This document shows, in pieces, positions 4,389 to 62,400 of a stretch of DNA of 64,000 nucleotides (within the stretch, counting starts at the first letter, position 1; each line of letters starts with the position of its first letter). The notes below the pieces were generated by a model, which was not told the origin of the DNA, ran no database searches, and saw nothing but the letters and a program-made list of their open reading frames with translations. The position numbers and the translations under genes were made by a program. The DNA lies in NCBI GenBank assembly GCA_047495785.1, contig JBLDXI010000042.1, positions 1,798,001-1,862,000 of the forward strand, written 5' to 3'. Origin of the DNA: Lepidodermella squamata. Taxonomy: Eukaryota > Animalia > Gastrotricha.

Positions 4389-5346
4389 ATGAACTTCTCG
4401 ATTTTTCTAGCCGTCGTTCTATTTGGTATAAGCAATTTCAAACATGCTTTGTCCTAAAATTCTTCGTTCTTTGTTGACAGCCATAGCTTTTACTGAAGCT
4501 GGAATTACAGCTGCTAGGCGGGATCGCAAATACAAAAGATGGCGCCATATTTCGCTCGACGGCAATTCGAATGCCAACTCGAATGTGAACAACGTCGATG
4601 CTAAGCTGTACATCTATGACAGTGAAGAAGCGCCATCGCCCTTTCTATGGTGGTTCTACTACCATCGAAAAGTTTCGACTACAACACCAGAGCCGCGGAC
4701 GGAAACCTCAACATCAACAACAACAACAACAACAACAACAACAACTACTACTACTTCTACTACTACAACGACCACGACCAATGACAACAATGCTACGACA
4801 CCTGATCCCGTGAGTTGATTTCCGGCCTTCGAGATTAGAAATCGATTATAATAAATTTGCATCCCATTTTTTCTTCATCAGGCCGTGTTTTCTCGGTGTC
4901 TCGGCCCAGATGGCTTTGTAATGTGCCGATCGACAGCTTGCGACAGTAATGAGAAGAAATACCCATCGACAACGTATGCCAGCCTTTCAGCCTGCCAGAA
5001 CGCTGTCAAAACGATAACATTCTACCCTATCGGCGGGCTGCTCCCAGACGCCGTCACGTATTGCACGAACCTCGGCGGACTGCTGGCGACTATCAAGACC
5101 CAAGCTGAACTTGATCTGGCTATGACACTTAAAGGCGACGTTACGCTGGCTCATATTGGCCTGTCGAATGTGTCCGGGCAGTGGACATGGTCTGATGGTA
5201 CGCCGTATGCTAACATGCCGCCCTGGGGCCCCAACCAGCCAGATGCTGGGCCCAATTCTTGTGCCGTTCTCTACGATGGAGCAGTTGTCTATGACGGTGG
5301 CTGTGGCGCTGGGGCACCTGGATTTCTATGCGAAACATATGCTTGA
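4389..5346 (+). CDS. C-type lectin family A gene (A3, most divergent copy)
   Basis: Exons 4389-4425 (MNFSIFLAVVLF), 4481-4809 (pro-segment, long poly-Thr) and 4882-5346 (4-Cys module + CTLD with HIGLSN, WTWSDG, QPD, FLCETYA). Confidence 0.9.
4715..4779 (+). repeat. (ACA/ACT/ACC)n coding microsatellite, poly-Thr mucin-like stalk
   Basis: Trinucleotide run inside exon 2 of A3. Confidence 0.85.
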
Positions 5347-5539
5347 TTTCACCGAAAAATTAAAAACCTTTTTCGTTGTACTCTGTAAACTCTGTGAAAT
5401 CACCTTATTATTTATAAATTCCCAATTTTTGAGTATATTTTGGACCCTGAATAGACATCGAATAAAGTAATGAGAGAGCTTCTTTTCGATGTTTATGAAC
5501 AAGTGATCAATTGTGAAGGAGATCAACAGTGCGGCTATG

Positions 5540-5694
5540 CAGTGCTCCGAGAACGGGAGGTTAGGGGGGCAAAAGAACCCCCCTGGCGTTCGAAAATTTC
5601 TGAAAAACGTAAGGGTCCCCCCTGTTGATTTGCAAATTTTGGGCTCAAAATGCTCGATTTACCCCCTTCAGAGCTGGACCTAGTCGGATCACTG
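5540..5694. mobile_element. hAT-type MITE (family 1)
   Basis: TIRs CAGTGCTCCGA / TCGGATCACTG. 8-bp TSD cggctatg / ccgctatg (7/8). Homologous copy at 13688-13829. Confidence 0.85.
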
Positions 5695-6318
5695 CCGCTA
5701 TGCAGCTTGAATCCCTTCAAAGCTGTGTTCCGATTTTTGTCCACTTGCTTTCCTCGCATTCTGTTTCGTTTAGTTATTTTTGTTTTCCTTTTTTATCAAT
5801 ATCATAGACCTTACTCATTAGAACAACATCGAAGACTTTAGACTTATAGGGAATTATATCGGTGATTTTTTAATCGCGCATTAATTAGTTTCTCGAACTT
5901 CGAACCAATGGGCAGCAGCTTAACGAAAAAATCACAATTTATTCCAAATTTGCGTACACTTTTTCGCAATTTCTTCCCAGTGGCAGACACTTTCAAGTCA
6001 CGAAAAAAAATCGGAGGACTGCTTCAAAGATGAAGACAATTTTTGCTGAGAAGGAGCCATCAGAATTTCGTACTTCCCCTGATATTTCATTAATATTTCC
6101 CCACCCTAATGTTTCGCCTTAAATTGAAAGCAGGACGGGACAACCCAACCCAATGTAACAGATGTTACTCAGTTACGGAGCTGGGTCTTACTTTGCTAAC
6201 TCACACATTTCTGCAATTTGAGTGTTTACACAAGTTGATGCTGAGCTACCTTCATTTTTAATTACACGTTTCAAAAAGGCCCAAGCTCCAACATTTCACT
6301 TTTCGATTCTCCGTGAAA

Positions 6319-9300: not shown

Positions 9301-10563
9301 TGTGATTGCTGTTTCATGCTTGGATGGCTTCGCATTGCAAGGACTCGAATTTGTCTATTGCCTAGCTAACAACTCCTGGTCGCAACCCGGCAACTGTATT
9401 GCGCATGGTATGTTATTCTAGAGGAAAATTCACAACTTCAAAGAGGTTTCAATTATTATTCTCAATTTCCAGAAAACGCAATCCTAAAATTTAAATTTAA
9501 ATTTAAAAAAATTGAAACAATTCAAATTATTAATTATGTTTCCAGAAAAATCAGTAATTTCTTGAAATGGGAAACTTGATTTCGATTTCTCTAGTGTGGG
9601 AATCAGGATTCTAGAAGGTACTTCCATGTAATTTCGGACCAAGGGACCCCTCTGTGATTCTTTCGGGTTTTCTTGCCGGGACCTTCGGTTCCCCCTTACC
9701 TCCTTGTACTTTGAATTTTGCTTTACATTTCCCGTATTTCGCTCACACGGGCAAATTACCTATGCAATTGTTGTACTTGGATAAGGTTCCTGCGTGGTCC
9801 CTTCAATCGAAAACGGCTCTGTCATTGATGAACTGGCGTCGAAACCTTACGAACCACTCGCACTACTCGCACCCGGCTCCATCATCGTTATTCACTGCAA
9901 TAAGACCTTCGAAGTCGTTAATGGTTCCATGGTTTCAACTTGCTCATTCGAGTCAAAATGGAAACCTGAGCCTGGTTCGTGTCGCTTCAAGGTAAAAAAA
10001 TGGTTCACAAATAAAAATGGACTAGTCTATCTTCATTTTTCCAGGATGCAACCGCCGACCAATTCTTGCTTATCGAAGCTGTAAAATCTGGTAACTTGAG
10101 CGCTGCTAAGAAATTGGTGGAGCAAGGAGCTGTGAATGTTAACTGGCGTGATGAGAGGTCCCAGGGTGATTGGCCTGTCAAAAATGGAACTGCACTTCAC
10201 ATCGCCCTAGCTTTCAAAGCCCCTCTGGACCTCATTCGTTTGCTCGTCGAAGAAGGCCGTGCTGATGTGAATCTTAAGGAGGACACGTACGGTTCACGGC
10301 CGCTTGAAATCGCAGTTTCGGAATGTAGCGGCGAAGTTGTGGAGCTTTTGCTGAGAAATGGCGCTGCTATCGATGCGAGAAATGGCCGTGAGGGCTACAC
10401 GGCTCTCATGGCTGCGGCTATCAAGGGCAGGCTTGATAACGTTCAGATTCTGGTTCAATACGGCGCTAGTGCGAAACTTAAGTCGAAGAAGGGAACAACT
10501 GCTCTTGACGAGGCCATCTCAGCCAACCGTGACCAAGTCGTTCGATTCTTACGTGCTTTGTGA
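6319..10563 (+). CDS. Secreted ankyrin-repeat / sushi (CCP x4) / ankyrin mosaic protein (short paralog)
   Basis: Signal peptide MKRLILILIVVNFQSALLS. Ankyrin repeats ([42 protein letters not shown]) in exons 6319-7296 and 7481-~8696. Four CCP-like exons ~8747-9991 (C..GYSLIG..W..GYC; CMDTFTLKG..CLENGTWS; CLDGFALQG..CLANNSWS; CVVPSIENG..WKPEPGSC). Terminal ankyrin exon 10045-10563. No TM segment seen. Confidence 0.88.
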
Positions 10564-38757: not shown

Positions 38758-41700
38758 ATGAAGGTCAAGTCACGATTTCTCACAATTTTATTGAAATTTC
38801 TCGAAATTAGTACAGCTTTGAAATTCGAAGCCGCTGGAAATGCTGAACTGAAATCGACCATCAAGAATCTAAGCTCCTCACGTCAAAAAGTCGCCGAATT
38901 AAGCGATCCAATGCCTCGATTTGTAACTTCAACCCACTTCAACACGAAATCGACATCAAACAGGACGAAATTGATCACAATTTTAACATCGATCAACTAC
39001 CTGGGACCATTATATACAGGTCCGATTAGTACCAAGTCGCTTGAATTAGCTCTCGATAGATTCGCCGTTTTAGAAAACTGGCTGCCTGGCTATGAAGTTG
39101 CACTCGATTTGATAGATGATGAATGCCTTGATGGGCCGACAGTTACTGGGTTAATGCATCAGATTCAGCGAAATCAGGACGAGGCTGGCCAACTGAATCG
39201 CATCTCACTCATGTTTCCTACGACGTGTTCAGCTCAAGAAACATCTGCAGAAGTTCTGAATTACTACAACCTAACAGGGGTAGGTGGTAAAATTTTATTT
39301 CGAAGCCCAGTCAGATTATTTTTCGATATTTCAAAGCTCAGATCGCATTAATGAACCTGTTCTATGGGCCACGTAATTCAAAATTCAAGCCTAGGCAAAT
39401 TGAATTAAATTTGTGTGAACCTTTAAAGCTCCTCATTGCCCATTCTATAAAGTCACTTGAACCTTATCAAATCTTATGGGACCTTTATGACCGTTTTGGA
39501 TCCTTCAAAAACCTACTTGGGTTTGAGCTTCAAACTTTGGTTCGAAATCCCTGCTTCAAGCAACAAAGAGAAAGCTCGTTGGAATTATTGAAACGCTTCC
39601 AGCTATTTCCACTGACCTTTCTAAGCTTGGTTAAGATTCCGGAACCTTTTCGAAGCTATGGGAACCTTTACACTACAACATCTGAACATCAAAAGGTTTT
39701 AGTTCTTTTCCAGCTTGATAATTAGAAGTATTTGAATCATCTAGAGCTTTTTCGTGTCTTATTTATGTTCATGGTACCTAGGCGAAAGGAAAGAGGATTG
39801 AGAATACTCACAGTGAACATTGAGCTTTGTCATTCTGATGAAGCCCGTCATCCTTTATTTGGGAATTTCTCAGTGGAGTTAACCCCTGCGAATCATTTTC
39901 ATCATTCTAGTCTGTATCAAGATCCTTTTTACTTCAGATGGTCCTGCTTCAAAACACCCCAGAATTCTTACTACAACGCAAGCGGTATAAGCAGTTTTTC
40001 GGGCTCGGTGAAACAGGCGACAAACCCTACATCGCATTGGCCTCATTTGTCTCTCAGATGGGCTGGCGTCAGATTGCCGTCATATCGGAAATAAATTCCT
40101 ACTTCAACGCAGTAAGTGCGATTTTATGATGCATAAACACGTTAAAACAATTTAGTCCCTTTGATAGATTGAGCGATATTTCTTTCCTGTTCTCACTCGA
40201 ATGAACATAACCCTAGCGTGGGTCGGCAAAGTGACGTATGCATCGTCGAACAGCGACGAGTTGGTTTCAAATTTCGAAGAGCTAAAATCTCACGATCAGC
40301 GAATTATTTTCGTAAATGGCGACTCCGCATCTGCCATGGCGTGCTGGCTGCACCGATACAAAATGTTCGGACCATCCTACGCCCTGTTCTTCGTAAACTG
40401 GGTCTACATCCCGCCAAGCGATTGCTACATCCCAGAATACGTTGCATCTTGGTGCACGAAGGTAATGGTAGCCCAAGTTTACGAGGGCGCCTTTTTCATG
40501 GGTGATTCTTCACTGCTAGATGTTTACGGCGAAGATTGGACGGATTCGACTGGGCTTAGTGGCGCGCAGTTTATCGAGGGTATGAGGTCGAAAATCAATC
40601 GCCCTGAAGAATCGATTGGCTGGCAGTATTGGCGGACTATGTATTACGACGCTGGGCTGTATCTCGGCTTCGTCCTCAATAAGACTGAATCGATTCTACG
40701 GGGCAGGAATCAAACCCTACTCGATTGGACGATAAATTCTGAAAAATTCCGGGAAAATGCTTCGGAAATCATGAAAATCTACGAAGAAGCAATATATTCG
40801 ACCCATGTTCGAGGTTTTAAGGGGATTTACGACTTTGACCGGGCTACAACGGTGAATTCAAACGGCTACACCCCTGCAACGCTATTTCAGCTGAGAAATA
40901 CGGAGGATTTCAGCAAGTACCCTGATCAATTCGTGGTTGGGATTTACCAATCGAATAACCGGACAAATCCTCTTACGCTGCGGCGCGATCTTGTCAAATG
41001 GAGGACGAAGGATGGATTACCGCCACTGGACAGACCCATTATCGTGCGCTTAGAAGTTCCTTTGATCCCGCAGCTTATTGCTGGAACAATTTTTGGTGAG
41101 AGAAATTATTATTTTCTTGGATGATGCATCCAATTACCCAAAAAATAGGATTCAAGTGATTGCTTTGGTTTGATTTACAGGTATTTCAGCAATTATCTCA
41201 ATTTCCATGCTTTTGGCGATGCTATTCATTACTTTCGGAGCGAACCCCATTCATTCGACCTATTTTAGCCACTGCGAGAAAATTCTAGGCTGCGGCAACG
41301 TTGTAACTTGTCTCTGTGGCCTTGCAATACCGATAAATCATTCAATGAGAGCTAGTATCGCAGTTTGCGCTATTGCAATTGCTATTTTCGTTTCTATCGG
41401 CTTTGTAACCACAATGCTCGGAATCATAGGCCAAATCGAATTACTTCACGCGAGACTGAAATATTCAAACACCAGAAGTTCTCGACATTTCCTGAAACCT
41501 TCCTTATCAATTCGACAATCAGGGGAGAGTTCTGGGAAGCAATGTATTAGACTACCCAGCGAATCCAGTGTACAGGGCCGAGAGCTTAGAAATGGACCTG
41601 GTCGCTTGAAAGTTGCAATTTTCGTTCTGAACTGCTTTCTTCTTATTGGAATATGCGTAACTGTACCTCTGGAGACAGTCCAAGAAAGCGGGCCATTTTT

Positions 41701-42377
41701 TTATGAAGATGGCGATGCGAATTCGATATTTCAAACATTTTGCTATAAGCCGTCTGTCTCCGCATTTCCGAATGAGGTCCAAGCAATAGCGTTTGTTTTA
41801 GCCGCTATTCATTTCCTCGTTTTCGCGTACGCTTGCTACGCGTCATTCAAATCCAGTAATGTAAGTCATTCAAATTTCAAACTATAATTTGATTGGATAA
41901 ATTGTTTTCTGCTAAACAAAAATCTCTATGATCTTCCATAATTTCCTTAAAAATAGTATAAAATTCGCGAAGTCAACAAAAACTGTTCCAAATTTTTTAG
42001 GAAAATTTATTTTATACCGCCTATTTTCAGAATCTACACTCGACCCAATGGAATTTCGATCTCGTTCTTCAAACAAGACGCGTCAGTCGAGCTCTTTACT
42101 GTACCGCCCTGTTTCTAATGGCTACAACATTCCTCGGTTTCCGTCTCGGTCCAGATTACACCTTGCCTCTAGGGGCCAGCTTAGCTGTCCTTTTTTCCGC
42201 TACTTCATTCGGCCTGGTGATATTGCCAAAAGTGAGCGAATTCCGCTTTTTATGAATTTCATCTAATCTATCTCCATTTAACAGGCTCTATGCAACAAAC
42301 CTACTATTCCGACTATTAAATCGAGCATGTTAGCAATCCAAAACCAAAACGGTACAATGACGATCACGATGAACTGA
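38758..42377 (+). CDS. Divergent GABA-B-like class C GPCR (Venus flytrap + 7TM), copy 1
   Basis: Signal peptide; ANF-type motifs LELAL..LPGYEVAL...DDEC, GWRQIAVI, LKSHDQRIIF, YYDA, GFKGIYDF, WRTKDGLPPLD; hydrophobic helices ending FGLVILPK. Exons 38758-39279, 39938-40111, 40168-41095, 41181-41860, 42031-42231, 42285-42377. Confidence 0.85.
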
Positions 42378-42559
42378 GCGGAATTTTTGGAAAAAAACGA
42401 ACCAGTGCAGAAAGCGCATCATTTTCCAGAAATAAAAGATGAATTTACAGTTCACAGGAAAAAAATGCGGCAGCCATCGAACTCACCGGGGGTGGTGATT
42501 TTTGTGTCTTTCAGCGATAGCCTGGACCTAGGACAAGTTTCCGTGAAGTCGAGGCGTTT

Positions 42560-43118
42560 TACTACTGAATACCCCGAACCCAGCCATCCAATACAACTAG
42601 TGGCTAGTGCCATGCCAGATTACCCTTTTATCGGTCCAAACTTCAACAATCCCGCCGAATATTACACCACATGATGTTTCCGCCATCAGTTGGTGGAGCA
42701 GTGCCTGATTACGCCCCGCCGTTCAGCAACATACTGCCGACGACGCAAATGAAGCAGAACCAGTTGATGTGCGACAGGTAACAGCGCAATATTTTTGGCG
42801 CGCGTGTTAAGCTGGAAAATTCCTTCTTCATGTGAACCTTAACGATGCAGGACTACGTTCGGGGGCAGCGTGCCATTTTAATCGTGGCAGCGTGCTGTTG
42901 CCGATGTGGCCAAAGATTTTGATGAGATAATGACCGAGCGACTGACGCTTAAAGAGGTCGACAAGGCCGCCGAGAGGTTTTCAATTTTTCCCTTTTCAAC
43001 GTTGAGGTCGGTAACGGTGACGAATTCACTCATGCGATTTCGGAAACGCATTCACATGGGTTCAGACTGTCGATGGTCAAAAGATGAGCCCTGGGAACCT
43101 CGCACAATTATGGAATAG
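42560..43118 (+). pseudogene. Decayed copy of the orphan gene at 57596-59154
   Basis: Homologous segments (ASAMPDYPFIGPNFNN; GARVKLENSFF; AKDFDEIMTERLT.KEVDK) with the start region deleted, plus stops and frameshifts. Confidence 0.8.
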
Positions 43119-43199
43119 CAAGTGCTCGAAAAAAGTCGGCAATTTTCACGCATACATATTTAAGTAAGCTTACCCTTATTCGTTGAATGCCACTTCTAA

Positions 43200-44061
43200 T
43201 AGTGCGTTCACAAACTACTTCGTAGAGGCGTCCGAAGTTTTCGGCCACCGAAGTTTCGTAACAGGCCTCCGAAGTTGCGTAATCGCTGCCCGAAGTTTAG
43301 ATTTTCGTACACAAACGCGCGCACTTCGGCCAGCGCGGCCGAAGTTTTAACAATAGGCGGTGCGCGCGCACCGAACAAAGGAAGCGCACAAACTTCGGTT
43401 CGGAGAGCCCCAAAACTGCTCTCCGAAGTGCCTCCGAACCGAAGTTTGAGCGCCTCCGAAGTTATTACGCACGCACGCAAACACACACGCGCGCACACAG
43501 CCACTTTACCACACTGTACCAGGCGCCTCAAATTTGTCTTTCCGGTGATATTTTCATTGACAATGCGATCCGTTTCATTAGCCATTAAAAATTACATAGC
43601 AATAGTGAAGCATTTAGATACTGAGAAGTTAATATTGCAAAAATGTCCGGTTTCTATGACGAATTTTTAAATCTATAAATAGCGCGGCTCGTATGGAAAA
43701 ATTGGCTTTGATGAGAATGCGCGAGAAAATATTTTTTTATGGCGAATCTGATGAACTGAGCGCTGAAATTTAGCTTCTTTTTATCCTCATCAGAAGGCGC
43801 GTCTCATTATGCAAACAATTCGGAGAATTAAGGTAAAATGGAAAAAAATTGCATTGACCCTGAGTAAGAGCCATACCCGCGCGTGGTGTGTGAGCGAGCG
43901 GCCAAACTTCGGCCGCAAACAATAGAAACTTCGGTCGTCACGCCGCGCGCGCGCGTAGAAAATGCCACTGATAAGGCCACCGAAGTTTTGCTATTTCTCT
44001 CCGAAGTTTCTACTTCGCTCTCCGAAGCGGTCGGTCTCCGAAGTAGTTTGTGAACGCACTA
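43200..44061. mobile_element. Non-autonomous TIR element with arrays of subterminal CCGAAGT repeats
   Basis: Perfect 23-bp TIR TAGTGCGTTCACAAACTACTTCG flanked by TAA on both sides. More than a dozen CCGAAGT/ACTTCGG motifs clustered at both ends. Confidence 0.85.
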
Positions 44062-44189
44062 TAAATCGATTACAGCAAAATGGATACAAAATATGAAGAG
44101 CTCAAAGGTTTATACAAACGCATATTTTATTCGCTGCAAATGAACATTATGGCAAAGTCTAAACAGAATGTACAATATGGAGGAACAGT

Positions 44190-47100
44190 CTAGTGAAATG
44201 AGGCGTTGGTGTCTCGCTTGCCGATGCGAATGAAGCTGCTATACTGCATAACGCTGTTGGTACCGAATGAAATTTGAGAATAGCCAGTTCCGAAATTTTT
44301 GAAAAACGATTGGCTTTGCCACTGTCTGCCGCAAAACATCTCGTCGGTGCCGTCACCTATAAGCAAAAGAATTCTCAACTTTACAAATTAGTTTTCGAAT
44401 ACATAGGTACAAATGAAATCGAAATTGATCGATTGGTTGAAATTATTTGAATCTTGATGGATTAACAACTCACGGCAGTCTCTGAAGCCGTTGCACCTCG
44501 CACTAGGACTGTAGCACTCCGTACGACTAATGCATGGCATAGCACCGAACTTGCAACTCGGGCAATGCTCATCACTGCGGTCGCCTTATATTAAAACAAA
44601 AATATTAGTAAAATGATGATCTAGTCTCATCTCGAGCCCGTATTACCGCAATCATCGTAACCGTTACACACTCGACTGTAAGGCACGCAGTACTGTTTGT
44701 TGCGGCACAGAAAAAATCCTGGATCGCACTGTCTCAATAGAAAGTACAGCTGTTAAACAAGATGATCTATGACATTTGAACTAACCTGTGGGCAGCCATT
44801 TTCGTCACTGTTATCAACTGGGGAAGCAAATACTTTAGCAGCTAGAAAATGCAGAAACTTGAGGAACTTACAGCAATCGTTAACGCCGTTGCACAGATGA
44901 CCAGATGTTATGCAGAAGGGAGCATTGATGCAGGGGAATGACCCAGGAGCGCAATTTTGTGGCGGAGGAGGTGGAGGCTGAGCCTAATTTGTGAAACATT
45001 GATCATGCTCATGATTAGGGAAAGCACCTACCGTGCGGTGAGTATTTGCGTCACGGTCATCGTTTGTCGTTTCTTTACAGTCATACTCATCGCTATTGTC
45101 GCCTGAAATTAAAAAAATTGGTTCAATGTAATGAATGAACAGTTTTGGGTGTTTGTGACATCAATGGCATTTTGATACCAAATAAAAGTCGTCATAACTT
45201 TCAGCAGAAGCTTAAACACTGAGAAAAACTCACCGCAGTCATCAGCGCCATCACATACCCAACCTTTTTTGATGCAATTACCGTTATCGCATATAAATCC
45301 CGAGCACTATACAAAAGTTGGAGTATCTTCCGACTATTCATTGCTATTTTACAAAGCACTCACCGCGGTCGTCGTGGGCCGGGTCGTAGGAGGTGGGGTA
45401 GTTGGAGGTGTTGGGCAACCCTGCTCATCGCTACCATCACCTTAAGAAAATGGAACTCGTCATTTCTAACAAAATTTTACGCTGTTTAGAATAGCTCTCC
45501 ACTATTGGCAGAGTTCGAGTAAATTCTGCCCGTCTTCGAACTTATGAAAACCTACGATTTGTCGAGATTTGAATTTGATTGGTCGAAATGTACCAAAAGC
45601 GGTGAATTCTTTATATTCAAGCCTTAAATTTTTAGTTATGTCAAACTCGAAGTCTGCGATCAATTTGAACTTTAAAAACGATTTCCAAGTTTCTGGTAGT
45701 TATTCAAGATTTTAAGCTAAAGCCACTCATTGATTAATGAGTATTAGAGCGAGAACAACTCACCGCAATCGTCAGTTCGATCGCATTTCCAACTATAGTT
45801 GATGCATTTACCGTTATTGCAACGGAATCCCGAGCACTGCGCGAATGTTGGAATCAGTCAGTCCTTTTCATTTTTGTATAGGACTTACCGGGGTTGTGGT
45901 AGGTGGGGTTGTTCGACGCGGTGGGCAGCCTTCCTCATCGCTCATATCACCTGAAAAGTATTTTGGTTGAGTAGGATGCACTGAATGGATCAGCACATAA
46001 TCCTCCTAACGACTCACCGCAATCGTTATCACCATCGCATTTATAACTTCTAGTAATGCATTTGCCGTTGTCACATCGGAAACCCGAGCACTGTGGCATT
46101 GAAACATCGGATATAACATTTCAAAAGAATAATTTCAAAGGAAATATATGTACCGGAGTCGTAGGTGGAACTGTCGCTGGGCAATCCTCCTCATCGCTTC
46201 CATCACCTAGAAATATTTGAAAATTAATGTAGCCGTGATTACGAATCGATCTCAATTTTGCATACCGCAGTTTCTGATGCCGTTGCACCTCTGCCACGAG
46301 TCGTAGCAGCCACCGTCACGGCAAGTATTCGCGTAACACTAGAGGAGTTTTGAATATTCTCCCAGATTTATATTATACTTTTTTCGTAAAATACCGGTCG
46401 TTTGGTGGTTGGACAGTTCAATTCATCGCTGTAATCTCCTGCATTCAAAATTGAAGTAAATTATGAACATCATTTTTTCAAAAGACAATTTATTGGTGCA
46501 CATCCTATATTTGAGGTCCAGCGGTTATATTGGTTTGAAATTTTGACGTCGGGTTCTTTCACAAATGTTTGCATGAGTAAATGTACACCTTTCATTTCTG
46601 TGAGCCTCATAAACCCTTGAAAAATTCGGCTTTGACAAACTGTTTCGGGCAAGGGTCCCTTAGATTTTTCCAATGGTTTCTATGGGTTCGGTATTTTTTA
46701 ATAAATTTCTTGTCCAAACCCTGAAACATGATTTTTTAAGCAAAAACTAACCGCAGTCGTTGTTGCCGTTACAGCGAAGTGATGCAGGGATGCACAGTTT
46801 GCTTGAGACGCATCGAAAATCGTAAGACGGGCACTATAAGCCAGAATTGACGAAGCGATATGAAAAATACAGGTTTTTGACAAAAACAAGAATGAGAAAT
46901 ATCAGAATAAATCAAACTCACGTAAGAAGTGGTGGTTGTTGTTGGCTCTGGGGTAGTAACTGGGCAGTTCCATTCATCACTTCGATCATCTGCGTGTAAA
47001 ATATCATAACATAAAATCAGGACAAATTCTCGAGGAAATTCATACCACAGTCGTAAACTCCATCGCACTTTACAGACCAAGAAACGCATTGGCGGTTACG

Positions 47101-50100
47101 GCAGATAAATACGGCCTGAAAATCGAACAAAATATAAGAATTATCCAGATTCAATGATCGAACTGCTCACGCAAGGCGTCGTTGTTGTGGTCGTGGTCGT
47201 GGTCGTAGTCGTGGTTGTTGTTGTAGTCGTTGTAGTCGTTGTCGGCCTCAATTCATACAACTTCTCAGAAACCCTCGCCAAGGCATTGCTCTGCGCGAGA
47301 GCCATCGCTGTAACACCATCTACATTCGCATGATCGATATCAGCCTTCCGATCGATTAGTAACAAAGCTATGTCCTCCTGTTTCGCTTTCAACGCCTCAA
47401 ACAAAGCATTGCTACCCTTGAAGGACGTCGCGTTCACATCGGCGTAGTTATCGAGCAGTAACTGGACCAATTCGAGACGGCCCTTGCTTGAGGCTGTCAT
47501 CAAAGCCGGCCAACCCTCGCGATCTTCCCTCGAATCAACAGCTGCGCCTCGGTCGAGCAAAAGCTTCAGAACTTGGGGGTCAGGATGGCCGACAGCAATC
47601 TCAAGAGGCGACGAGCCGTACTCTCCCTCCTTTGCGTTGACATTAGCTCGGTTCGGGTTAACCAGCAGTTCGATGAGGGCATACGGTGCATAGTGAACCA
47701 GAGCGATATGAAGAGCTGTGCCATTTTTGACAGGCCAGGGGCCTAGGGTCCGTTCGTCTCGCCAGTTCGCGTCCAGGTAACCGAGACCGAGAAGTTCTCG
47801 CGCCTTATCAACATTGCCGTTTATGCATGCCTCGATCAACATCCGCTGTTCGGCGATCCAATCCTTGAGGAAATAAGAAAGTTAAGATTGAACATCGGAT
47901 TGGCCTTCAAATGAATGCAATTTACCTTTCTCGCGCATTCTCCGATTTTTGGTTTCCAACTCGAATCGGCTTGGCAAATCGATGCCATGGCTCCATCTTT
48001 AACCTCGAATCCTGGTTTACATTTCGTTATTACCGCTTGTCCCGGGGCCATCTCAACTCCAACCGATAGTACAGTTTTCTCGGTTGCATCCAAGACGAAG
48101 CCATTCTCTAACGATGGAACACTGCAAAGACCTGAAATCGCAAAGAAATTGAGTTTAAAATGTCTTTAACGCCCCGCTGGCGACCTTTTTGCTTGCAAAC
48201 GCCAGGAATGGACCAGGAACTGTTCTTCAAGCAAACCATCAAGCCAGAACCAACTAATTCGTAGCCTTCCAAGCAAGTCAATACAGCAACTGCTCCGGGG
48301 TTGAAGATGTTATCTTCGGTATGGACTGAGATATTTCCGTTGGCGACTTGGGGAGGGTCGTCACATTGCGGAACATCTGTTTGAAAAGTTGGAAATTAAT
48401 CAATACAGAATTTCCGGAAATTCCTACCAATTCCTTGGCAGTACCCAGGCTCGCTCCAAGTTCCATCGTCGTAGCAAGTGAAACTATTTGCCCCAACCAA
48501 TGAGTACCCATCCATGCACTCGAAAGTAAAAACAGTCCCGGGAGCAACAATTGCCGGGTCGCCAAACTCTGTCCTGACGGATGAGATTGATGGGAAAGGT
48601 GGGGAACAGCCTAAAAAAGTCATGTAAAAACGAAATAAATGCAGCATGAATATTGCTTCCAACCTTTAGCGCAATAAGCATCCATGGCCCAAACGCCACC
48701 GTTAAAATCGACAGTTTCCGATCCGATCAAAAAGTAGCCTTTATCACAGATGATTCGCCCAGTCGCACTTTTGCAAGCACTAGCTGCTTCCTGGAATTCT
48801 ATTTTCCCGTTGGCCATCCCCTTGGGCCTATCGACGAGGGCTAAAATATGAGCATTAGCGTGGAATAATCAGAAGAATTTGAAAAATTACCTTGGATTGA
48901 TAAAGTGGGTGAAGCCCGCAATTCTGCGGCGCAAGATTGCATCGTTTCAACTTTGCATCGATCGAATTTCTCCAAAACTGCTACAACACGATTATAGCCG
49001 GCAGCTTCAGCCCAAATCATCGGTAAATTCCCATTCGAATTCCGATCGCAAGGAGCTTCGTACTTCTCGAGTAAAATTTCGACCAACTCCGGACATTTCC
49101 GTTCAATCGCTAGCCATAGCAGGGTATCGCCCTTCACATCTTTTTCGCTGAGCTTCATCGAAATTTCACTCTTTGTTAGCATCGATAGTAGTGTATCGAC
49201 AATTTTAACGCTTGCCTCGCTGCATCGAGCTGCCCGGTGCAAAACAGACCGGCCGCTTGGGTCCACCCAAGTTCCAGCTGTCCGATTTATCTTGACAATT
49301 TCTTCGATTCCCTCGACGAATTCGACTTCGATGGCAATAGAAATCGGGGTCTCCTTATCTTTATTCGCTTGGAACAATTGCCCGATTGATTCTTTACCAG
49401 ACAGCGCCGTTTTAACCAAATCGAGTTGCTTGAAACGAAGAGACGCGTGGAGAAGCCTGTCGTCACTTTTGCAGTCGATTCGAGAATCGAAGAGAATTTT
49501 CTCAGTTTCGAGGAGAAATTTAGTGATGTCGTTACGGCCGAGTTCGATTGCCAACAAAAGCGGTGATTTTCCGAATTTATCGCAGCTCAGCAAGTCGATG
49601 CTGTTCTTCACTTTCTCCAGGACTTTCAGATAATTCGATTTTACGGCGAGATGAGCGATCGACTGTCGATAGCTGTTTACTTGAAATTTCTCTGCACCTC
49701 CTTTCATCAAATATTCGATGAACTCGATTGGTTTCCGCTGGTCGACAGCTACCAAGAGCGGGGTCATCTTCATCGGGAATTCATTGTCTTCAGTCAGCTG
49801 ATTTTCGTAATTGAATGCGCCTGGGTAGTCGCTTTTGTGTTTCTCAAAGGCTTTTATACTTACAGCGAGATGAATTCGTGAATAGCCGTAGAAATCAATC
49901 GCATCTTTCCTAGCTTGGTAACGGTTGCTAAGGATATCAGCGAATGACTCGGCGTCGTTAGCAACGGCGACCAGATAAGGAGTTCTGCCTGTAGAATCGC
50001 GTTCCTCCATTAACAGAGGGATTTTATCAGCAAAAGTTAATAGGATTTCATCCGTGGATGTTGCATCGAGAAGATGAGCATCGGCATCAGACAATTTCGC

Positions 50101-51459
50101 CATGGTATGCAGAACATTTTCCTTAGTCGAAACCTTTGGAAAGAGAATGAGGAATGTTGGAGGCTAATCATTTCGCAGCGTTCCACTAGCTACTAGCTTA
50201 TGTGGCATAAATTCTGGAAAATACTATAAAAAAGCTATAATTTCAGGACAATATTACGAAGGCCCGAGATCAACAAATTTCAAATTTTTCGAAATCTCTC
50301 TAAAGAGAAACTGTTTCGAATGAATTTTTATTTTTATTGATTTTTTTAATTTCCGAAGAAAAGTTTCTCAACATTTTATGACATTACACATTCAAATATT
50401 ATCATGTAAATTTAATAAAAAAATAGATAAATTCCTAGAAAAGTAGTTAAAATTTCCTAAATGTTGTCCAACCTGAGGCGCTACTTGAACTGAAACATCG
50501 AGTCCAGTTTCGCTGTAGTAACGAACCAAATCAGCTCTGCGAAGAAAAGCAGCGAGAAACAGCAAAGATCCAGTGCCCTTCGGCGAAATCCCATCAGCGA
50601 TCAGTCGGCACTTGAGAGAGGCTAACCAAGTGGCTGAAGGTGCAACCTTGTCCATAGCTTTCTTAACAAACTCCAAATGGCCGTTACGAGTTGCGTAACA
50701 CAATGGCGTATCTCCTTGCGGATCGATAGCAAATATGTCAAACGACTTCAATCCAGCTGGAGAGTCGAGAAATTCAAACTTGTTCGCAGCAGCTAACAAG
50801 TGAGACTCAGTTACGCGTCCACTGCCTTTTCGATCATAGAGTCCTGGATCGCTCAAAATATTGACATTGCCAGTGCGATTCGACGCAGCTGCTATTCCTA
50901 TCGGTAGCTGGCCGTTTTTGTCGCGATGAAGTCGATTAGCCCCTCTCCCGAGCAGAAAATTGAGGATATCCTTGTAGTTAACAGATTTGGACATCGCAGC
51001 ATAGAATAACGGAGTTTGGCCAGCGTTTGTCTCAGCCTCCAATGAAAACCGCTTTTGCAGGCCTAATTCATCGCTTTTATTCAACAGATACTCCATAAGT
51101 TGAAGCTTCGATTGAAGGCAAGCCAAATGAATAGGTAACTCGCCTTTGCTGTTGCGAGCGGTCAGTTTCGCACCGGCTTCTTCAACGAGAAATTTTACGC
51201 TTATCACCGCGCCTTTAAACGCAGCCAAATGAAGCAGAGAGTCGTTGTTCGACGGGCTCTTGACATTAGCAAGGTCGTTCAGCCCGCCTGGTAACAATTT
51301 ACTCGCTTGTTCTTGCAGACGTTCAACTCGGTTGTACTGGACGTTGGTTACAAAGTTGTCGAAGGTGGTCATTTCTGGCTGATTCGCTCCACTGCATGGC
51401 TTCGGCAAGGATAATATCGTGTAAAATAGAAGCACCAAAAGGTGCAAATTGCTATACAT
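44190..51459 (-). CDS. Secreted ankyrin / CCP x4 / ankyrin / poly-Thr / LDLa x9 mosaic protein (long paralog)
   Basis: Signal peptide [25 protein letters not shown]. Ankyrin exons 51459-50473 and ~50132-48892, CCP exons ~48840-47925, ankyrin + poly-Thr ~47886-47171. Then small exons 47114-44190 give nine LDLa repeats (e.g. [33 protein letters not shown]). No TM segment. Confidence 0.88.
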
Positions 51460-52158
51460 GAAAGTACTTTTGCCTACGGGAAAGAAAAACAGCATTTTAC
51501 AAAAATCGATTACAAAATTATCTCAAAGTTCAAATCCAGAAATTGCATGTCTAAATAGGCGAGCTAAATGTATCAGATATGAGATTCGTGAACTTTGAAA
51601 TATCAGGGATCAGAGATTCCAGAATTCAAAAATCCGTGAAAATCAGCAGCTTATCATCGTAAATTAATGGGAAACGCGGTAATGGAAATTCAGGTTTTTC
51701 CCTGTAGAAGAGTAGCTTCGGTGGGTAACAATAATTAGTTTGGCCTTCAAGTTTGAGATTCAATGATTTGAATTGCTTGACATTAATCTTAGTCCTGTTT
51801 ACCTAATTAATGACTGAATCGAGTGTATTTGCCCCATGTTTACATAACGCAAACACGTGTGCTCTCCCTCAGTTACGATGTACCATTTCTTCGAGAGCGT
51901 TCAGTGGCAACAAATTGCTTCCTTTGTTTACTTATTGAAGACATTGCACTTTGCTATTTTACTCGTTTCGTTCATTTAAATCATCAGGACTTCATATGAC
52001 ATCCATGTCGCAAAGCTTATCGAAATTTGAAATGAAATAGCTCTATTTCTGGGAGTTTTCAAAACAGGAATGTTATCAGCTGCCCCCAGCTTATCAACTA
52101 TCATAGACTCATGTAGAAGGGAATTCCTAATTTTTTTCATTTTTACACGCTAAGCAAC

Positions 52159-53638
52159 ATGGCAGGAAAAGATAACTCCTTAGTGCTGTTCAACTCGAAA
52201 AGCGATTTCACCATCATCAGAACAGTAGGCCGCGGCGGCTTTGGCTCCGCTTTCCTAGCCAAACACAGCAAGGACCGATATTCCGAGTATGTCCTAAAAG
52301 AAGTGAACCTCACCGTGCTTCGAAGTCAACTTGCGCGAGCCCAGACAAGCGAGAAGCGCCAGCTTAAAATGCTTGAACTAGCGCGGAAAGAGCACAAAGC
52401 CCTGCGGCAGTTCGTCCACCCTAACATTGTTACCGTCTACGGCAATTTCGAGCAGAGAATTGGCGAAGAAGATTTCTATTTTCTCGTCATGGAGTTCTGT
52501 GATGGGGGCGATTTGAGCTCGCTGATTCAGAAAAACGAGACCAACCGAACGCAAATCGATGAGACCCAAATTGTTTCCTGGCTTGGGCAGTTGATCGGCG
52601 CAATTTTGTACCTCCACCAGGGTGGCCACGTGCACCGAGATATCAAGCCGAAAAATATTTTCCTTACTAAGGACTTGAAAAAAGTCAAGCTCGGGGATTT
52701 CGGTCTTGCGAAAAATATTGAAGAGTGAGTCATTTCGAGTTTTTACTCATTTCGGAAAGTTCCTATATTTAATAAGGACTGCGCTGCCCCAATCATCCAT
52801 TACAAATGCTTGTACGTTGGTTTATGCGGCCCCAGAATTTCACAATGGTGAGGCCTACAGCAAGCCATGCGATATTTGGTCTTTAGGCGTCACAGCTTAC
52901 GAATTGGCAATTTTCTGTAGACCTGTAAGTTAGGTTTTTAGGTCCCGACAATACAAAAATTATGAACATTGCAGTTTGGATGTGGAGCCAGGGAGATTCT
53001 TGCAATAATACAGTAATATTTTGAAAATTTCTGATTTTTGTGTTCATATTATCGGTTAAAGGGACGCTCCTAAGCCTTTTCCAGCTGAAAAGAAGTATTC
53101 CACCGCCTTTGAAAACTTTGTCATGTCTATGTTGGAGAAAAACGCAGTAAAACGGCCGATAATCGAAACACTCTTCAATGATCCGATTCTACAACATGAA
53201 ACGGAACAAATAATAGTTGTTGAGAAAAAGAGCGACGCCAAGAAATCGTCTGAAAATGCTAGCAAGGTTCTTGAAGCTTCAATGGTACATTTCATCACTG
53301 TTTTTCCGTCCTTAAAGCCGAAATCTTATTTTTTTCAGGATTTTTCGAAGATCAATCAGTCGGCGGTTATACCTGAAGAATATCGTAGTAAAATCGTAAA
53401 AGTGCTACAGAAGAACCTAGTTTCAACCGATGAGCTGGTCAAATATTCGGATGACCAGCTGAAGGAGCTTTTTCCGATAATAGGCATTCGCAACGTTGTG
53501 CTGCGCTGGCGGAATCACGAAAATGGAGAAGTATCGCAAGGTGACCGCAAATCAAAGTCTGGATCAAAAGCATCATCATCATCATCATCAAAAGCCAAAC
53601 CTGAGGACGATTTGACGGAATTAACCCCTAACAGATAG
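52159..53638 (+). CDS. NEK-like Ser/Thr kinase with a C-terminal SAM-like domain
   Basis: GRGGFG, YVLKEV, HPNIV, MEFCDGGDL, HRDIKPKN, KLGDFG, YAAPE, YSKPCDIWSLG. The tail KNLVSTDELVKYSDDQLKELFPIIGIRNVVL is SAM-like. Confidence 0.85.
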
Positions 53639-54039
53639 TTGTAGGCCTATGTTGAGATGTATTTTTGGAAATAAAAATAGCTCAGAAACGTTAAGGTTTT
53701 GCGCCATTTCAATTGCTGCTCCAATCGATCTGTTCATTGAAGTCCCAAATTTCAATTTTTTATTTTGATGCTTTCAATTTCTGACAAATGTCCTAGTTTA
53801 CGGAACATTCTTTGGTTGTGGTGGTACCAAGTATCACGGGTGCATTTTTGCCGCTTTTGTTATCCTTCGCTAAAAATAGCTCGTTTCATATATCAGCGAA
53901 ACTGAAAAATTCCAAGAAAGAGGGTCTCGCTTTTTTCGAGCAAATACAGATAAAAACGGTAGCGGCCGTTAGCTAGATAAGTTTCGCTAAATTCATTTTT
54001 TGCCAACGTCCGAAATTCAAGTGCATACGGAAAAAAAGC

Positions 54040-56989
54040 ATGGCATCGACGCGTTTCCAATCCCGCGGCGAATTCGAAGTGCTCCGAGAACTGGGCAGTG
54101 GTGGTTTCGGCAATGTCAGCCTAGTGAAGCACCGAAACGATCTATACACAAGCTATGTCATGAAAGAAGTTAACCTTACAGCTTTGCGCAAGAATTACGA
54201 CCATGAAGGGCTAAGTGAACGCAAAATCGCTCGCCTTCTCGAGCTGAGCCGCAGTGAGCACGAAAAAATGCGCAATTTCGTACATCCCAACATTTTACTG
54301 GTCTACGGATTTTTTGAAGGTTAGCTAAGTAATTCAGATCAATTTTAGATCAATATGATTGCAATTGATCCAAGTTTGATCCATTATTGATTCTTTGACG
54401 ATATAAAAGTGAATTTGATCTTGACTGTTGATCAAAATTGAACTATTTCAAAAGCGACTGATCCCGATTTGATCTAATTGTTGATTTTATTAACAAATCA
54501 ATTGAAAGTTATGCTGAGGTTTGATCATAATTTGGTTTGTTGTGACTACAGAGAAAATTGCTGGGGAAGACTTCTACTTTTTGATTACCGAGTATTGCGA
54601 GGGCGGCGATTTGGGTGCACTGATTGATAAATCGAAGAGAAGCCCCTTTCCTGAATCGCGAGTTCTGCGCTGGACCGGTCAATTGGTGAGCGCAATCAGT
54701 TACCTGCACAGTGCTGGTAATGTTCACCGTGACATCAAGCCGAGAAATATCCTCATGTCTGGCGATCAGACCAATATCAAGCTGGGCGATTTTGGCTTAT
54801 CGAAAAGTCTGGAGAGCGAGTAAAATTTAAATTTTAAATTTTAAAATTAATGTCATGAATTTGTTTTCGAAATTTCAGAAAGACCTCGATAACTACGGCG
54901 GGAACTTGGGCCTATTCTTCCCCAGAGTTTCACCTCGGGAAGCCTTACGAAAAACCATCCGATATTTGGTCAGTGGGTATCACATTGTACGAAATCGCCA
55001 ACGCGAAAATTCCCGTAGGTCATTCATTATTGATCAACTTGAATTTAAACTTTGAAACACAGTATGAAGGCACTAAGGGGCTGTTAATAACTAACATCAT
55101 CAATAAAGCGCCTTTGCCATTTGACGAATCCCGAGGCTACTCACCAGGCTTCAGTAAATTCGTAATGTCGATACTCGTCAAAGACCCGAAAAAGCGGCCA
55201 ACGATTGAGGATTTGATGGAAAGCCCGATTTTAGCCGGGGAACGATTGGTTACTCAGCCCTCTGCATCGCAGGCGAGGAGTTCTAGCAGTTCAAAGCCAG
55301 TTACTAACAAATCGAAGCCAACAACACAGTCCAATTCAACGGTGACACGATTTGTTAGTTCTGGCTACAAATTTTCAGATTTGCTAAGGTTTTCGCCTAT
55401 TTTAGGACGATTCGCAGTATGAGATGATTCTCCGGTCTCCCGATATCCCAGATCAGTACAAACAGCCGATCTGCGAAATTCTGCAAGGTAACGCGAAGTT
55501 CTTCTTGCTTAATCTCACTGAAATTTCGCGAATTATCAGAGGCATACGTGACGCCAGAGGAGCTTCTTGGCTACGATTTGGAGCAAATCAAGGAGGTTTT
55601 TCCGGCTGTCGGCTTGCGAAACGTAATCTTGAGATGGCGAGATGCGAACAATGGCAATGCAGTGTCCTCCTCGTCCCAAAAGTCAGCTGGTTCACGCAGA
55701 TCGGAGGCGAGTGTTTCGAAACATTCCGAGGAGGAAGTTGAAAAACAAAGGTCCAGTGTTCTCGCCCAGGCTGCACCGGCTTCAGTATCCCAAATTGACA
55801 CGTCTCAAGCTGATGCTGTGAAAAGAATCGCTCGGGAGGAAGCAAAGGGCATTGTCAGACAATTGGTGAGTAAGCTCGAGTTGCCCAAGCAATTTGTTTA
55901 ATTTGCGTTTTCAGACCACAAATTACTGGAAGCGCATCCATCAATTTGCGAAAAGCGGCAATTTCATGGGAATAAAGCAGATAATTTACGAAATTCAGCA
56001 ACGCCTTCCGTATGAAGTTCGCGACGAGATAGAACCCTTCAAGAGTCTTTTCGAGCATCAAAATGAGAATGAACTGTACAGTACGCCGTTGCATGACGCG
56101 AGTTGGAACGGCCACATGTCGGTTGTTGAGTTTCTGATCAATATTATCAACGTAAACTTGTACAGCCGCACGAACGATGACACCCGGTCGATGGCTATAC
56201 ATCTCGCGGCTCAGCAGGGCCATGAGAGCGTTGTTATGGCAATGGTCAGCAAAGACCGTGACTTGCTGGAGGCTAGGAATGAGAACGGAGATGCAGCGAT
56301 CCACTTAGCAGCTGCTAATGGCCAAATTTCAGTTAGTCCTTTCTAACAATGTACGAAGTCCTGGGGTGACGGGGGTACCGTACCTCCAGCTTAAGAGACC
56401 CGCGTAAGAAAACGCGAAAAAACCCCGGGGACCCGTAAATCCGAGAATTCGAGGTCGAAAATGCCTGAAAGTAACGCTTAGCTCGAGCTAACTTCTCAGT
56501 TTCCCAAAAACTTTCTCCTGGTTTTTATATGGAAGGATAAAGCTTAAGTCCCGAATATTTGTATAGCCCTGATCTTTTTTTTAAATTCAAATAATCTGAA
56601 ATCTAATTTTTTTATAGGTTGCATTTGAGTTGATCAAACTGGACAAGGGACAGTTAAACTTGAAAGGCTTCAACGGTCGAACTCCTTTGCACTCAGCTGC
56701 CCACGCTGGAATGATAAAAACCACCGAGTTTCTGTGCAAAGTTGGGGCGGATTTGTTAGCTGTCGATGGGACTAGTAGCAAATCTCTACCAATTCACTTA
56801 GCTGCGGCAGGGAACAAAGCTGACGTCGTGATTTTGTTCTACAGCCTGGACAATAAACTTCTGAAGGCGAAAGACGCCAAGGGCCGGACGCCACTTGATT
56901 TAGCAAAGGCGAATAAGGCGCAATGGGTTATTGATAACATCAAGAATGTAAAAGGTGGAGGAATCCTGGCCCAACTCATCGGCAAGTAA
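54040..56989 (+). CDS. NEK-like kinase - SAM-like - ankyrin repeat protein
   Basis: GSGGFG, YVMKEV, HRDIKPRN, KLGDFG, GTWAYSSPE, DIWSVG; SAM-like TPEELLGYDLEQIKEVFPAVGLRNVIL; ankyrin repeats STPLHDAS, AIHLAAQQGH, GRTPLHSAA, GRTPLDLA. Joined by GT-AG introns. Confidence 0.82.
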
Positions 56990-59441: not shown

Positions 59442-62400
59442 TTAGTGATGGATCGCTAAAATGCTCGATCTCATAGTCAGAATAGCTGGATTCTTGCATA
59501 GAGCCTGCCCAAATGAAATACACTGAATGAAAAATCATAAAAAAGCTCAATTCGCCCACTTTTGGCAGTATCACTAGGCCGAATGAAGTAGCAGAAAATA
59601 GGACAGCTAAGCTAGTCCCTAGCGGAAGAATGTAATCTGGACCGAGACGGAAACCAAGAAGCGTTGTAGCCATTAGAAACAGGGCGATACAGTAAAGAGC
59701 TCGACTGACGCGTCTTTTTTGAACAGCCAAATCGAAATTACATTCGGTCGAGTGTAGATTCTAAAAGTAGGCTGTTATATATTTTCACTTTTTTAAGGAT
59801 TTAAAACTTTAAATTTTCAAGATTCGTGTCGATATATAAATCCATTTTTGCATACTTTAGAAATTTTTAGAAATTTTCTTTAACAGAAAACAATTTTACG
59901 TTCAAAGCAGCTCGAAAGACTTACATTGCAGGATTTGAATGACGCGTAGCAAGCGTAAACAAAAGTAATGAAATGAAGAGCGGCCAAACCGATCGCTATA
60001 GTCTGCGCCTCGTCCGGATATGCTGAGACAACCAGCTTGTAATAAAAGGCTTGAAATATCGAACTCGCATCATAATCTTCATAAAACATTGGCCCGATTT
60101 CTCGCACTGTTTCCAATGGGCCTGTAGCAAATATTCCAATAACAAGGAAGCAGTTCAGAGCGAAAATTGCAGCTTTTAAACAGCTAGGTCCTGTTCGAAA
60201 TTCTCGGACCTGCAAACTGGATTCGCTGGGTAGTCTGATACATTGCTTTTCATTTGATAAGGAGGGTTTCAGGATTTGGCGAGAACGTCTGCTGTTGGAA
60301 CATTTCAGCCTTGCATCTAGTAATTCGATGTAGCCGATAATGCTGAGCATTGTGGTTACAAAGCCGATAGAAGCAAAAATAGCAATGGCCATGGCGCAAA
60401 CTGCGATACTAGTTCTCATTGAATGAGTTATCGGCATTGCAAGGCCAGAGAGACAAGTTACAACGTTGCCGAAGCCGAGAATTTTCTCGTAGAGGCTAAA
60501 ATAGGTCGAGTGAATGGGGTTTGCACCGAAAGTAATGAATAGCATCGTCGAAAGCATAGAAATCGAGAGAATTGTAGAAATACCTGTAAATCAAACCAAA
60601 GCAATCACTTATCTTTGAATCCTGTGTTTTGGGGAAAATGGATGCATCTCTCACCAAACATTGTTGCAGCAACAAGCTGCGGTATCAAAGGAACTTCTAC
60701 ATGCACGATAATGGGTCTGTCCAGCGGCGGTAATCCATCTTTCGTCCTCCATTTGACAAGATCGCGCCGCAGAGTAAGAGGATTTGACCGGTTATTTGAT
60801 TGGTAAATCCCAACCAGGAATTGATCAGGGTACTTGCTGAAGTCCTCCGCATTTATCAGCTGAAATATCGTCGCAGGGGTGTAGCCGTTTGAATTGACTG
60901 TTGTAGCCCGGTCAAAGTCGTAAATCCCCTTGAAGCCTCGCACATGCGTCGAATATATTGCTTCTTCGTAGATTTTCATGATTTCCGAAGCATTTTCGCG
61001 GAATTTTTCAGAATTTACCGTCCAATCGAGTAGGGTTTGATTTCTGCCCCGCAGAATCGATTCAGTTCTATTGAGGACGAAGCCGAGATACAGCCCAGCG
61101 TCGTAGTACACAGTCCGCCAATACTGCCAGCCAACCGACTCCTCGGGTCGGTTGATTTTGGACTTCATACCTTCAATAAACTGTGCGCCACTGAGCCCAG
61201 TCGAATCCGTCCAATCTTCTCCGTAGACATCCAGAAGTGAAGAATCGCCAATGAAAAACGCTCCCTCGTAAACTTGAGCGATCATCATCTTCGTGCACCA
61301 AGATTCAATATATTCTGGGATGTAGCAATCGCTTGGAGGGGTGTAGACCCAGTTTACGAAGAACAGGGCGTATGATGGTCCGAACATTTTGTACCGATGC
61401 AGCCAGCATGCCATAGCCGATGCGGAATCGCCATTTACGAAAATAATCCGCTGATCATGCGATTTCAACTCATCGAAATTCGAAACCAACTCGTCACTGT
61501 TCGACGACATATACGTTACTTTGCCAACCCACGCTAAGGGTATGTTCATTCGCATGAGAACGGGAAAGAAATATCGCTCGATCTGGCAAAGTGGCAAGAA
61601 GATACTTGAAAGGTTTCAGCTTCATAAAATCGCACTTACTGCGTTGAAGTAGGAATCGATTTCCGATATGACGGCAATCTGACGCCAGCCCATCTGTGAG
61701 ACGAATGAGGCCAATGCGATGTAGGGTTTGTCGCCTGTTTCGCCAAGCCCGAAAAACTGCTTGTATCGCTTGCGTTGTAGTAGAAATTCTGGCGTGTTTT
61801 GAACCAAGGCCATCTGCAATCAGAAATATTTTATATAATTAAAATAGAGTCTCCGAAATATGTGGATTATTGATGGTAATATACAGTATATCCACTACTT
61901 TCGGTGGTCATTATTTGCAGTTTTGGGAAGTTTCCAGGGTTCCAGGAAATGTAGCTAAAGGTTCCCTTGGCTGCGAAAAGGTTCGGGAATGTTTTTCCAG
62001 CTTAGGAAGGTCAGTGGAAATAGCTCAGGTTCGATAAATATCCCGAAATTCAATATCGATGTTTCAAGCTCGGAAATCGAACAAAGGTTAGAAGTCCAAG
62101 TCTGGACAAGTTTTCAAGGTTCCCGGGACAGCCATAAAGGTTCTGTAAGGTCTGTGTAATTTGTATGAAATATACTGCGAAGAGTTTGAAAGGTTCACAA
62201 AAAATCCTATTGAATTTGCTGAGACTTTAATATCAGAGGTTCAGAAAAGGTTCAATAAAGCGATTTGAGCTTCGAAATATAGTTAATTTCAACCTCTATC
62301 ACCTACCCCTGTTAGGTTGTAGTAATTCAGAACTTCAGCAGATGTTTCTTGAGCTGAACACGCTGTAAGGAACATGAGTGAGATTCGATTTAATTCGGCA

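Follow-up and report, generated by a model that had tools for sequence, protein, structure and literature searches.

The mosaic gene and its terminal exon

The window, by which we mean the whole 64,000-nucleotide stretch of Lepidodermella squamata DNA analysed here, carries on its minus strand a gene that spans ~51500 to 44190, as judged from Pfam matches and exon reading, and whose predicted product is a secreted mosaic (Ank-Sushi-Ank-Thr linker-LDLa x9) of ~1,700 residues by estimate (Table 1). An earlier sequence-only reading had spoken of a large secreted mosaic protein, and the description stands, with a signal-peptide-like start by inspection and extracellular modules from Pfam and exon reading; the class C GPCRs which it placed in the flanks fared less well, the flanking ORFs having no Pfam match at E <= 0.1. 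Apart from the Sushi/CCP modules that Pfam recognizes, a fourth, upstream Sushi-like ORF has fitting cysteine spacing without a Pfam match. All nine LDLa repeats possess the six cysteines and the acidic D-C-x-D-x-S-D-E cluster, and each is interrupted after D-C by a phase-1 intron; the resulting single-exon half-repeats give partial matches to Pfam PF00057 of 23.8 and 18.4 bits, to be read against a gathering cut-off of 24.1 bits. The nearest family member in the window (10066-10563, plus strand) ends right after its Ank block and has neither LDLa repeats nor a tail, so the LDLa array and the tail are special to this gene.

Table 1. Features of the mosaic gene and of its C-terminal tail (window coordinates)
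Feature	Position	Strand	Basis or remark
Signal-peptide-like N-terminus (M-Y-S-N, hydrophobic core, P-K-P-C-S-G)	51388-51459	minus	by inspection
Two large ankyrin-repeat exons	48844-51522	minus	Pfam Ank 1e-27
Sushi/CCP modules	47925-48868	minus	three with Pfam matches, 1e-8 to 1e-11
Third ankyrin block (~four repeats), then poly-Thr mucin-like linker	47174-47866	minus	exon reading
Nine LDLa repeats in 17 short exons, Pro/Thr-rich linkers between	44331-47171	minus	exon reading
Terminal exon: second half of LDLa repeat 9, then Cys-free 45-residue tail	44190-44356	minus	acceptor AG 44358-44357
Run of 122 nt, 100% identical in the second gene copy (C85)	44182-44303	minus	ends 8 nt past stop
xSSFxRI consensus, then Gly-Lys-Arg (10 codons)	44243-44214	minus	codons read directly; consensus PMC4200219, PMC5996578
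Patch of 32 nt resembling precursor copy 4 and spacer start (L024 2569-2538)	44205-44236	minus	27/32, same frame
Gly-Lys-Arg (amidation donor and dibasic convertase site)	44214-44222	minus	codons read directly
Seven post-KR residues D-T-N-A-S-F-H (N-A-S sequon) and TAG stop	44190-44213	minus	codons read directly
AATAAA polyadenylation signal	44126-44131	minus	58 nt past stop

The tail begins beyond the last Cys of LDLa repeat 9 (44333-44331 by exon reading); it is rich in Ser, Phe, Gly, Gln, and Asn, has no Cys, matches no Pfam family, and is probably unstructured and accessible. Its motif lies where the sequence-only reading had put it, in the last exon after the ninth LDLa repeat, and the minus-strand ORF 44190-44378 ends exactly as written there, the TAG stop (44192-44190) following the motif after seven residues. 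The penultimate exon ends in ...GAC TGC C, followed by GTGAGT, at 44474, and the last exon opens with GT GAC GGC ACC GAC GAG; the intron between them is in phase 1, a split position common to 9/9 LDLa repeats, and the joined reading across it is LDLa consensus. The frame of the tail is thus fixed independently of the motif, and splicing of the last exon in another frame, which the sequence-only reading had named as its own possible undoing, is not what we find. Two other readings of the protein's end were tried and rejected: a furin site (R-x-[KR]-R) at the GKR is ruled out with Ile at P4, and a GPI or membrane anchor is ruled out by the hydrophilic end of the tail.

That Gly serves as amidation donor and Lys-Arg as dibasic convertase site is established enzymology. 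The FxRIamides, or S-Iamides, share the ending x-S-S-F-x-R-I-amide (Stewart et al. 2014, PMC4200219; Zhang et al. 2018, PMC5996578); the first of them was the L-S-S-F-V-R-I-amide of Fusinus, and an annelid example is A-K-S-G-F-V-R-I-amide (PMC4200219, PMC5996578). The two papers bear out the choice of xSSFxRIamide as the family signature by which the tail had been singled out. FVRIamides elicit responses from annelid FaNaC-family channels.

A second copy of the gene

The genome contains a second copy of the whole gene, split between two contigs: its 5' part (C8:54072-63685) corresponds to window 56337-46694, and its 3' part (C85 286854-284821) to window 46695-44098; C8 and C85 break at one and the same intron position, and the synteny extends further downstream. 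The copy is a divergent haplotig or a homeologous region; a 5'-truncated duplicate on C85 was ruled out when the 5' half was found on C8. When the genome was searched with the tail exon or with the exon before it, these two gene copies were the only matches.

The tail is maintained in both copies. Only 3 of 167 nucleotides differ between the two last exons, with one synonymous change and one Ser-to-Val, as against 16 of 101 aligned nucleotides in the adjacent intron (84% identity) and 39 of 140 in the 3' flank (72% over the whole aligned flank, ~85% over its first ~90 nt), where homology ends ~30 nt beyond the AATAAA. By the Nei-Gojobori method, applied region by region, dS between the copies is 0.15-0.16 in the two large Ank exons, 0.10 in the third Ank block, 0.02-0.08 in the Sushi exons, 0.38 in LDLa 3-6, and 0.03 in the last exon. 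Since dS is so patchy along the gene, gene conversion could explain the 122-nt identical run; an RNA element behind this identity was ruled out, as the window matches no Rfam family and the fold is not a stable one (z = +1.35). The conservation is also not specific to the motif, because the seven post-KR residues are conserved as strongly as the motif itself and the Sushi exons as strongly as the tail. The motif is kept in the sole other copy (on C85), with one substitution in the tail, but the conservation does not single it out. This favors a sober view of the tail, namely that it is a conserved C-terminal extension with a different role (binding, sorting, or spacing, for example), that its likeness to a neuropeptide and its codon identity with one arose by chance, and that it is never processed.

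No ortholog of the protein or of its tail was found in the collections searched. A phmmer search for orthologs among 1.84 billion representatives, in which the 440-residue Ank exon was the query, returned generic ankyrin matches only, at 23-35% identity, and none of the best 150 had an LDLa motif or F.RIG-basic-basic; with the tail exon, a word search over proteins of 31-100 aa and a search of JGI metagenome contigs found nothing, and such blanks say little; and the best rows in the ESM Atlas, bacterial Asn synthases, are meaningless.

Resemblance to the FxRIamide precursor

The same genome encodes a genuine FxRIamide precursor (C20:119893-120411, minus strand), a 173-residue ORF with a signal peptide and six A-[A/S]-G-F-[M/L]-R-I-G-basic copies, each bounded by basic sites. 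Exons for peptidylglycine hydroxylating monooxygenase (PHM) lie directly upstream (Pfam Cu2_monooxygen 4.8e-20, and Cu2_monoox_C), and we take FxRIamide signalling and PHM to be present in the species. A/S-Gly precedes the Phe of the species' own peptides, whereas Ser-Ser does so in the tail. No homologs of the precursor were found by word search, and exact-product look-ups with the tail ORF and with the precursor found no record.

How often should a stretch like this arise by chance? We searched all six frames of the 121-Mb genome with a degenerate DNA pattern for F.RIGKR, taking the reversed pattern as control, and obtained 20 matches as compared to 15 for the control: i) four are in the precursor, 30 nt apart and all within its ORF; ii) two are the tail in both gene copies; and iii) 14 are non-genic, 12 of these in stop-to-stop segments of 20-46 codons and two without F.RIGKR on retranslation. 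A match reading I-F-M-R-I-G-K-R on contig C55 was ruled out as a further precursor, as its segment of 33 codons shows none of the features of a precursor. In real coding sequence F.RIGKR occurs only in the precursor and in the two copies of the tail. We estimate from the six-frame background (14 non-genic matches, 15 in the control) that ~0.4-0.8 chance occurrences of F.RIGKR in real reading frames are to be expected per genome, so the bare motif is unremarkable; the further requirements of Ser-Ser, a secreted protein, and an accessible tail, imposed a priori, lower the estimate to ~0.001-0.01 per genome and thereby count against chance. The cost of having looked elsewhere is nonetheless real, because ~160 neuropeptide-type candidates were flagged in this genome, and the tail has a single motif copy without an upstream cleavage site and is rich enough in Ser and Phe to make S-S-F likelier; each of these points favors coincidence.

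The sequence-only reading had also proposed comparison with the species' own FxRIamide precursor, and here the six-copy precursor on C20 supplies evidence against coincidence. The best ungapped DNA alignment of tail and precursor is the 32-nt patch of Table 1, within which 17 nt in a row are identical; of the five mismatches four are transitions, and all five (six with the adjoining base) fall outside the 15-nt R-I-G-K-R core, where all five codons equal those of copy 4 (p = 0.011 for any of the four GKR copies, given the codon usage of the gene). The similarity does not stop at the processing signal but runs three codons beyond KR, differing there by single transitions. At the protein level, the best BLASTP pair of tail and precursor has 8/14 identical and 12/14 positive residues (E 7e-4 as a single comparison), a short stretch whose precursor partner, S-G-F-L-R-I-G-K-R-N-I-D-S-S, is copy 4 together with the opening residues of the acidic spacer. 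Upstream of the patch there is no resemblance to the precursor, and the first Ser is encoded by AGC in the tail as opposed to TCA in the precursor.

Shared residues alone would entail some similarity in DNA. When the tail protein was held fixed and its codons were redrawn, the observed score (+1/-2) was reached in 18/3000 draws, an exact run of at least 17 in 2/3000, and the observed score (+1/-1) in 0/4000; when only S-S-F-x-R-I-G-K-R was fixed, and x, the post-KR residues, and all codons were redrawn, the score (+1/-1) was reached in 20/4000. These values of p, from below 0.00025 to 0.006, must be discounted because the tests were post hoc, run after the identity had been seen, and codon usage was taken from three exons; even so discounted, the DNA similarity between tail and precursor seems to exceed what shared residues explain (p ~0.005 or less, post hoc).

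The redraw tests make us lean less on chance as the main explanation and more on capture of a patch of ~32 nt, and we regard it as evenly poised, or a shade in favor, that ~11 codons of the tail share DNA ancestry with precursor copy 4 and with the beginning of its spacer. Against capture we count that the patch is only 32 nt long, that any mechanism would be putative, that the species' own peptides differ before the Phe, and that the architecture of the protein is not one known from neuropeptide precursors. The captured neuropeptide exon of the sequence-only reading therefore survives in part: the DNA does resemble that of a true precursor, but over only ~32 nt and not over a whole exon. That reading had also allowed for chance, and rightly so; we judge the likelihood that the tail is an unprocessed look-alike to fall a little short of even.

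Possible processing and known counterparts

In cells with prohormone convertase, carboxypeptidase E/D, and PHM/PAL, the protein would be cut after Lys-Arg with loss of its last seven residues, both basic residues would be trimmed, and the Gly would be converted to an amide, so that the product would be a large protein, or a long C-terminal fragment, ending in ...SSFIRI-NH2; with no cleavage site upstream, the heptapeptide could not be set free. We wish to make plain that cleavage, amidation, receptor action, and capture are all steps that we infer. Processing of the tail in vivo strikes us as possible but somewhat doubtful. The fuller proposition that this is a tethered neuropeptide, in which a captured FxRIamide unit would be displayed as SSFIRI-amide at the C-terminus of a giant secreted protein, we consider unlikely on present indications; were it true, a matrix- or target-bound protein might act as a local agonist or decoy at FxRIamide receptors (GPCRs or FaNaC-type peptide-gated channels).

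The sequence-only reading had instead suggested release of a discrete peptide, perhaps starting at pyroGlu after CGR, while conceding a single copy and no N-terminal dibasic site; the latter proved correct, there being no basic pair upstream in the 45-residue tail. Release as from a prohormone would take a monobasic cut after C-G-R and a dibasic cut after G-K-R, yielding a pyroGlu 34-mer with an SSFIRI-amide end, in effect a long-form FxRIamide. Gln does follow the Arg, the length is within the known range of amidated peptides, the Cys-free tail is probably accessible, and the N-terminally extended FxRIamides that oysters possess offer a precedent. The usual rules for monobasic sites call for a basic residue at P4, P6, or P8, however, and this Arg has none; it also lies two residues past the last disulphide-bonded Cys of LDLa 9, which places Cys at P3. 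We consider such a 34-mer very improbable.

Returning to an FxRIamide end that would stay on the protein, we compared the tail with three known systems. Like FxRIamide precursors, the host protein has a C-terminal S-S/G-F-x-R-I with Gly and a dibasic site after it, would enter the secretory pathway, and matches copy 4 of the precursor in its own genome in frame; unlike them, i) it has one copy of the unit where they have 6-17 in tandem; ii) the tail is without an N-terminal basic site where their units have basic sites on both sides; and iii) the unit stands at the end of a multidomain protein, almost the whole of which is covered by Ank, Sushi, and LDLa domains, where theirs stand in a small dedicated precursor. 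Lacking tandem copies and a dedicated precursor, the host protein is not a member of the FxRIamide precursor family, though it may contain a fragment of that gene.

Matrix proteins can also give rise to hormones by C-terminal cleavage, as asprosin arises from fibrillin-1, and in such cases the C-terminal fragment is released and not amidated. The likeness here would be that a large, modular, secreted protein is cut by a convertase close to its C-terminus and so generates a signalling product; the difference is that the cut would free no more than seven residues, and the end of interest would remain on the large protein.

The last exon of teneurin, a very large extracellular protein, carries a hormone-like stretch, the teneurin C-terminal peptide TCAP, in which GKR precedes the stop; TCAP was put forward on sequence grounds alone, and its processing is a matter of debate (PMC9108700). 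The tail resembles TCAP in the function proposed for it and in being a hormone-like sequence specified by the last exon of a large extracellular protein, with GKR near the stop. TCAP differs in having a convertase-like N-terminal site where the tail has no upstream basic pair, in having GKR directly before the stop where the tail has seven residues after KR, and in that it is conserved in teneurins throughout the metazoans and does not copy a canonical short neuropeptide. We see no evident homology to teneurin, Pfam recognizing only Ank, Sushi, and LDLa in the host protein.

What the tail would teach us depends on which reading is correct. Should coincidence be the answer, the tail cautions anyone who mines for neuropeptides by motif, as an exact nine-residue consensus in a secreted protein, kept in two gene copies, would still be a false positive. 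If it was captured and is processed, it would be a rare and datable case in which a large extracellular protein had acquired a canonical short neuropeptide unit by grafting; invertebrates would then offer a clean parallel to what has been proposed, and debated, for TCAP and teneurin, and one whose donor gene lies in the same genome; and the tail would suggest one route by which peptide signals may become tethered or matrix-bound.

A second, divided copy of the region

The region at window 39307-56337, which holds the gene, is present in a second copy in the same animal's genome (G000), from which it diverges by 5-20%; this copy is divided between two small contigs, C8 (G000:C8:54072-63685) and C85 (G000:C85:281057-286854), and the break falls exactly within one intron, at window 46694/46695. 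Past the break, the sequence on C8 and on C85 is unrelated and poor in ORFs, for over 14 kb on each contig. The split copy looks like either a divergent haplotig carrying a large insertion or the product of an assembly break. The second copy also lacks one LDLa repeat, in frame.

From exon to exon, synonymous divergence (dS) between the copies of the gene varies greatly: it is 0.02-0.03 in the final two exons (window 44474-44584 and 44190-44356) and some sushi exons (47839-48665), 0.15 in the ankyrin exons, and 0.38 in LDLa repeats 3-6. Introns adjoining the low-dS exons are 8-16% diverged. Gene conversion acting in patches could account for this pattern, as could an unusual constraint on synonymous sites.

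Linkers and flanking sequence

About 24 Thr codons follow one another at window 47174-47300, and Pro/Thr linkers recur between LDLa repeats (for example window 45364-45440); together these suggest a mucin-like stalk which would be heavily O-glycosylated. Just 3′ of the gene lies a segment of about 1.5 kb (window 42563-44098) that is absent from the second copy, where 0.5 kb of different sequence takes its place. The 1.5-kb segment contains short repeated motifs that read open in several frames of each strand, and it may therefore be an inserted mobile element or repeat.

Further out, window 39307-41097 and 60646-61816 both match C85 281057-282843, in opposite orientations, and the membrane-protein-like ORFs flanking the gene therefore look, from these alignments, like an inverted pair of paralogues. 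The sequence-only reading had called them class C GPCRs, a label left unconfirmed since Pfam found neither 7tm_3 nor ANF_receptor in the ORFs at window 59883-61615.

The FxRIamide precursor on contig C20

Immediately upstream of an FxRIamide precursor on C20 lies a gene for the amidating enzyme PHM (Cu2_monooxygen), so that amidating-enzyme and hormone genes are neighbours.

Positions of the C20 genes (L024, C20 locus numbering)
Feature	Contig position	L024 position	Strand
FxRIamide precursor	G000:C20:119893-120411	2394-2912	minus
PHM exons		4875-5711	same as precursor

The C20 gene is a genuine FxRIamide precursor, with six copies of A-[A/S]-G-F-[M/L]-R-I-G-basic.
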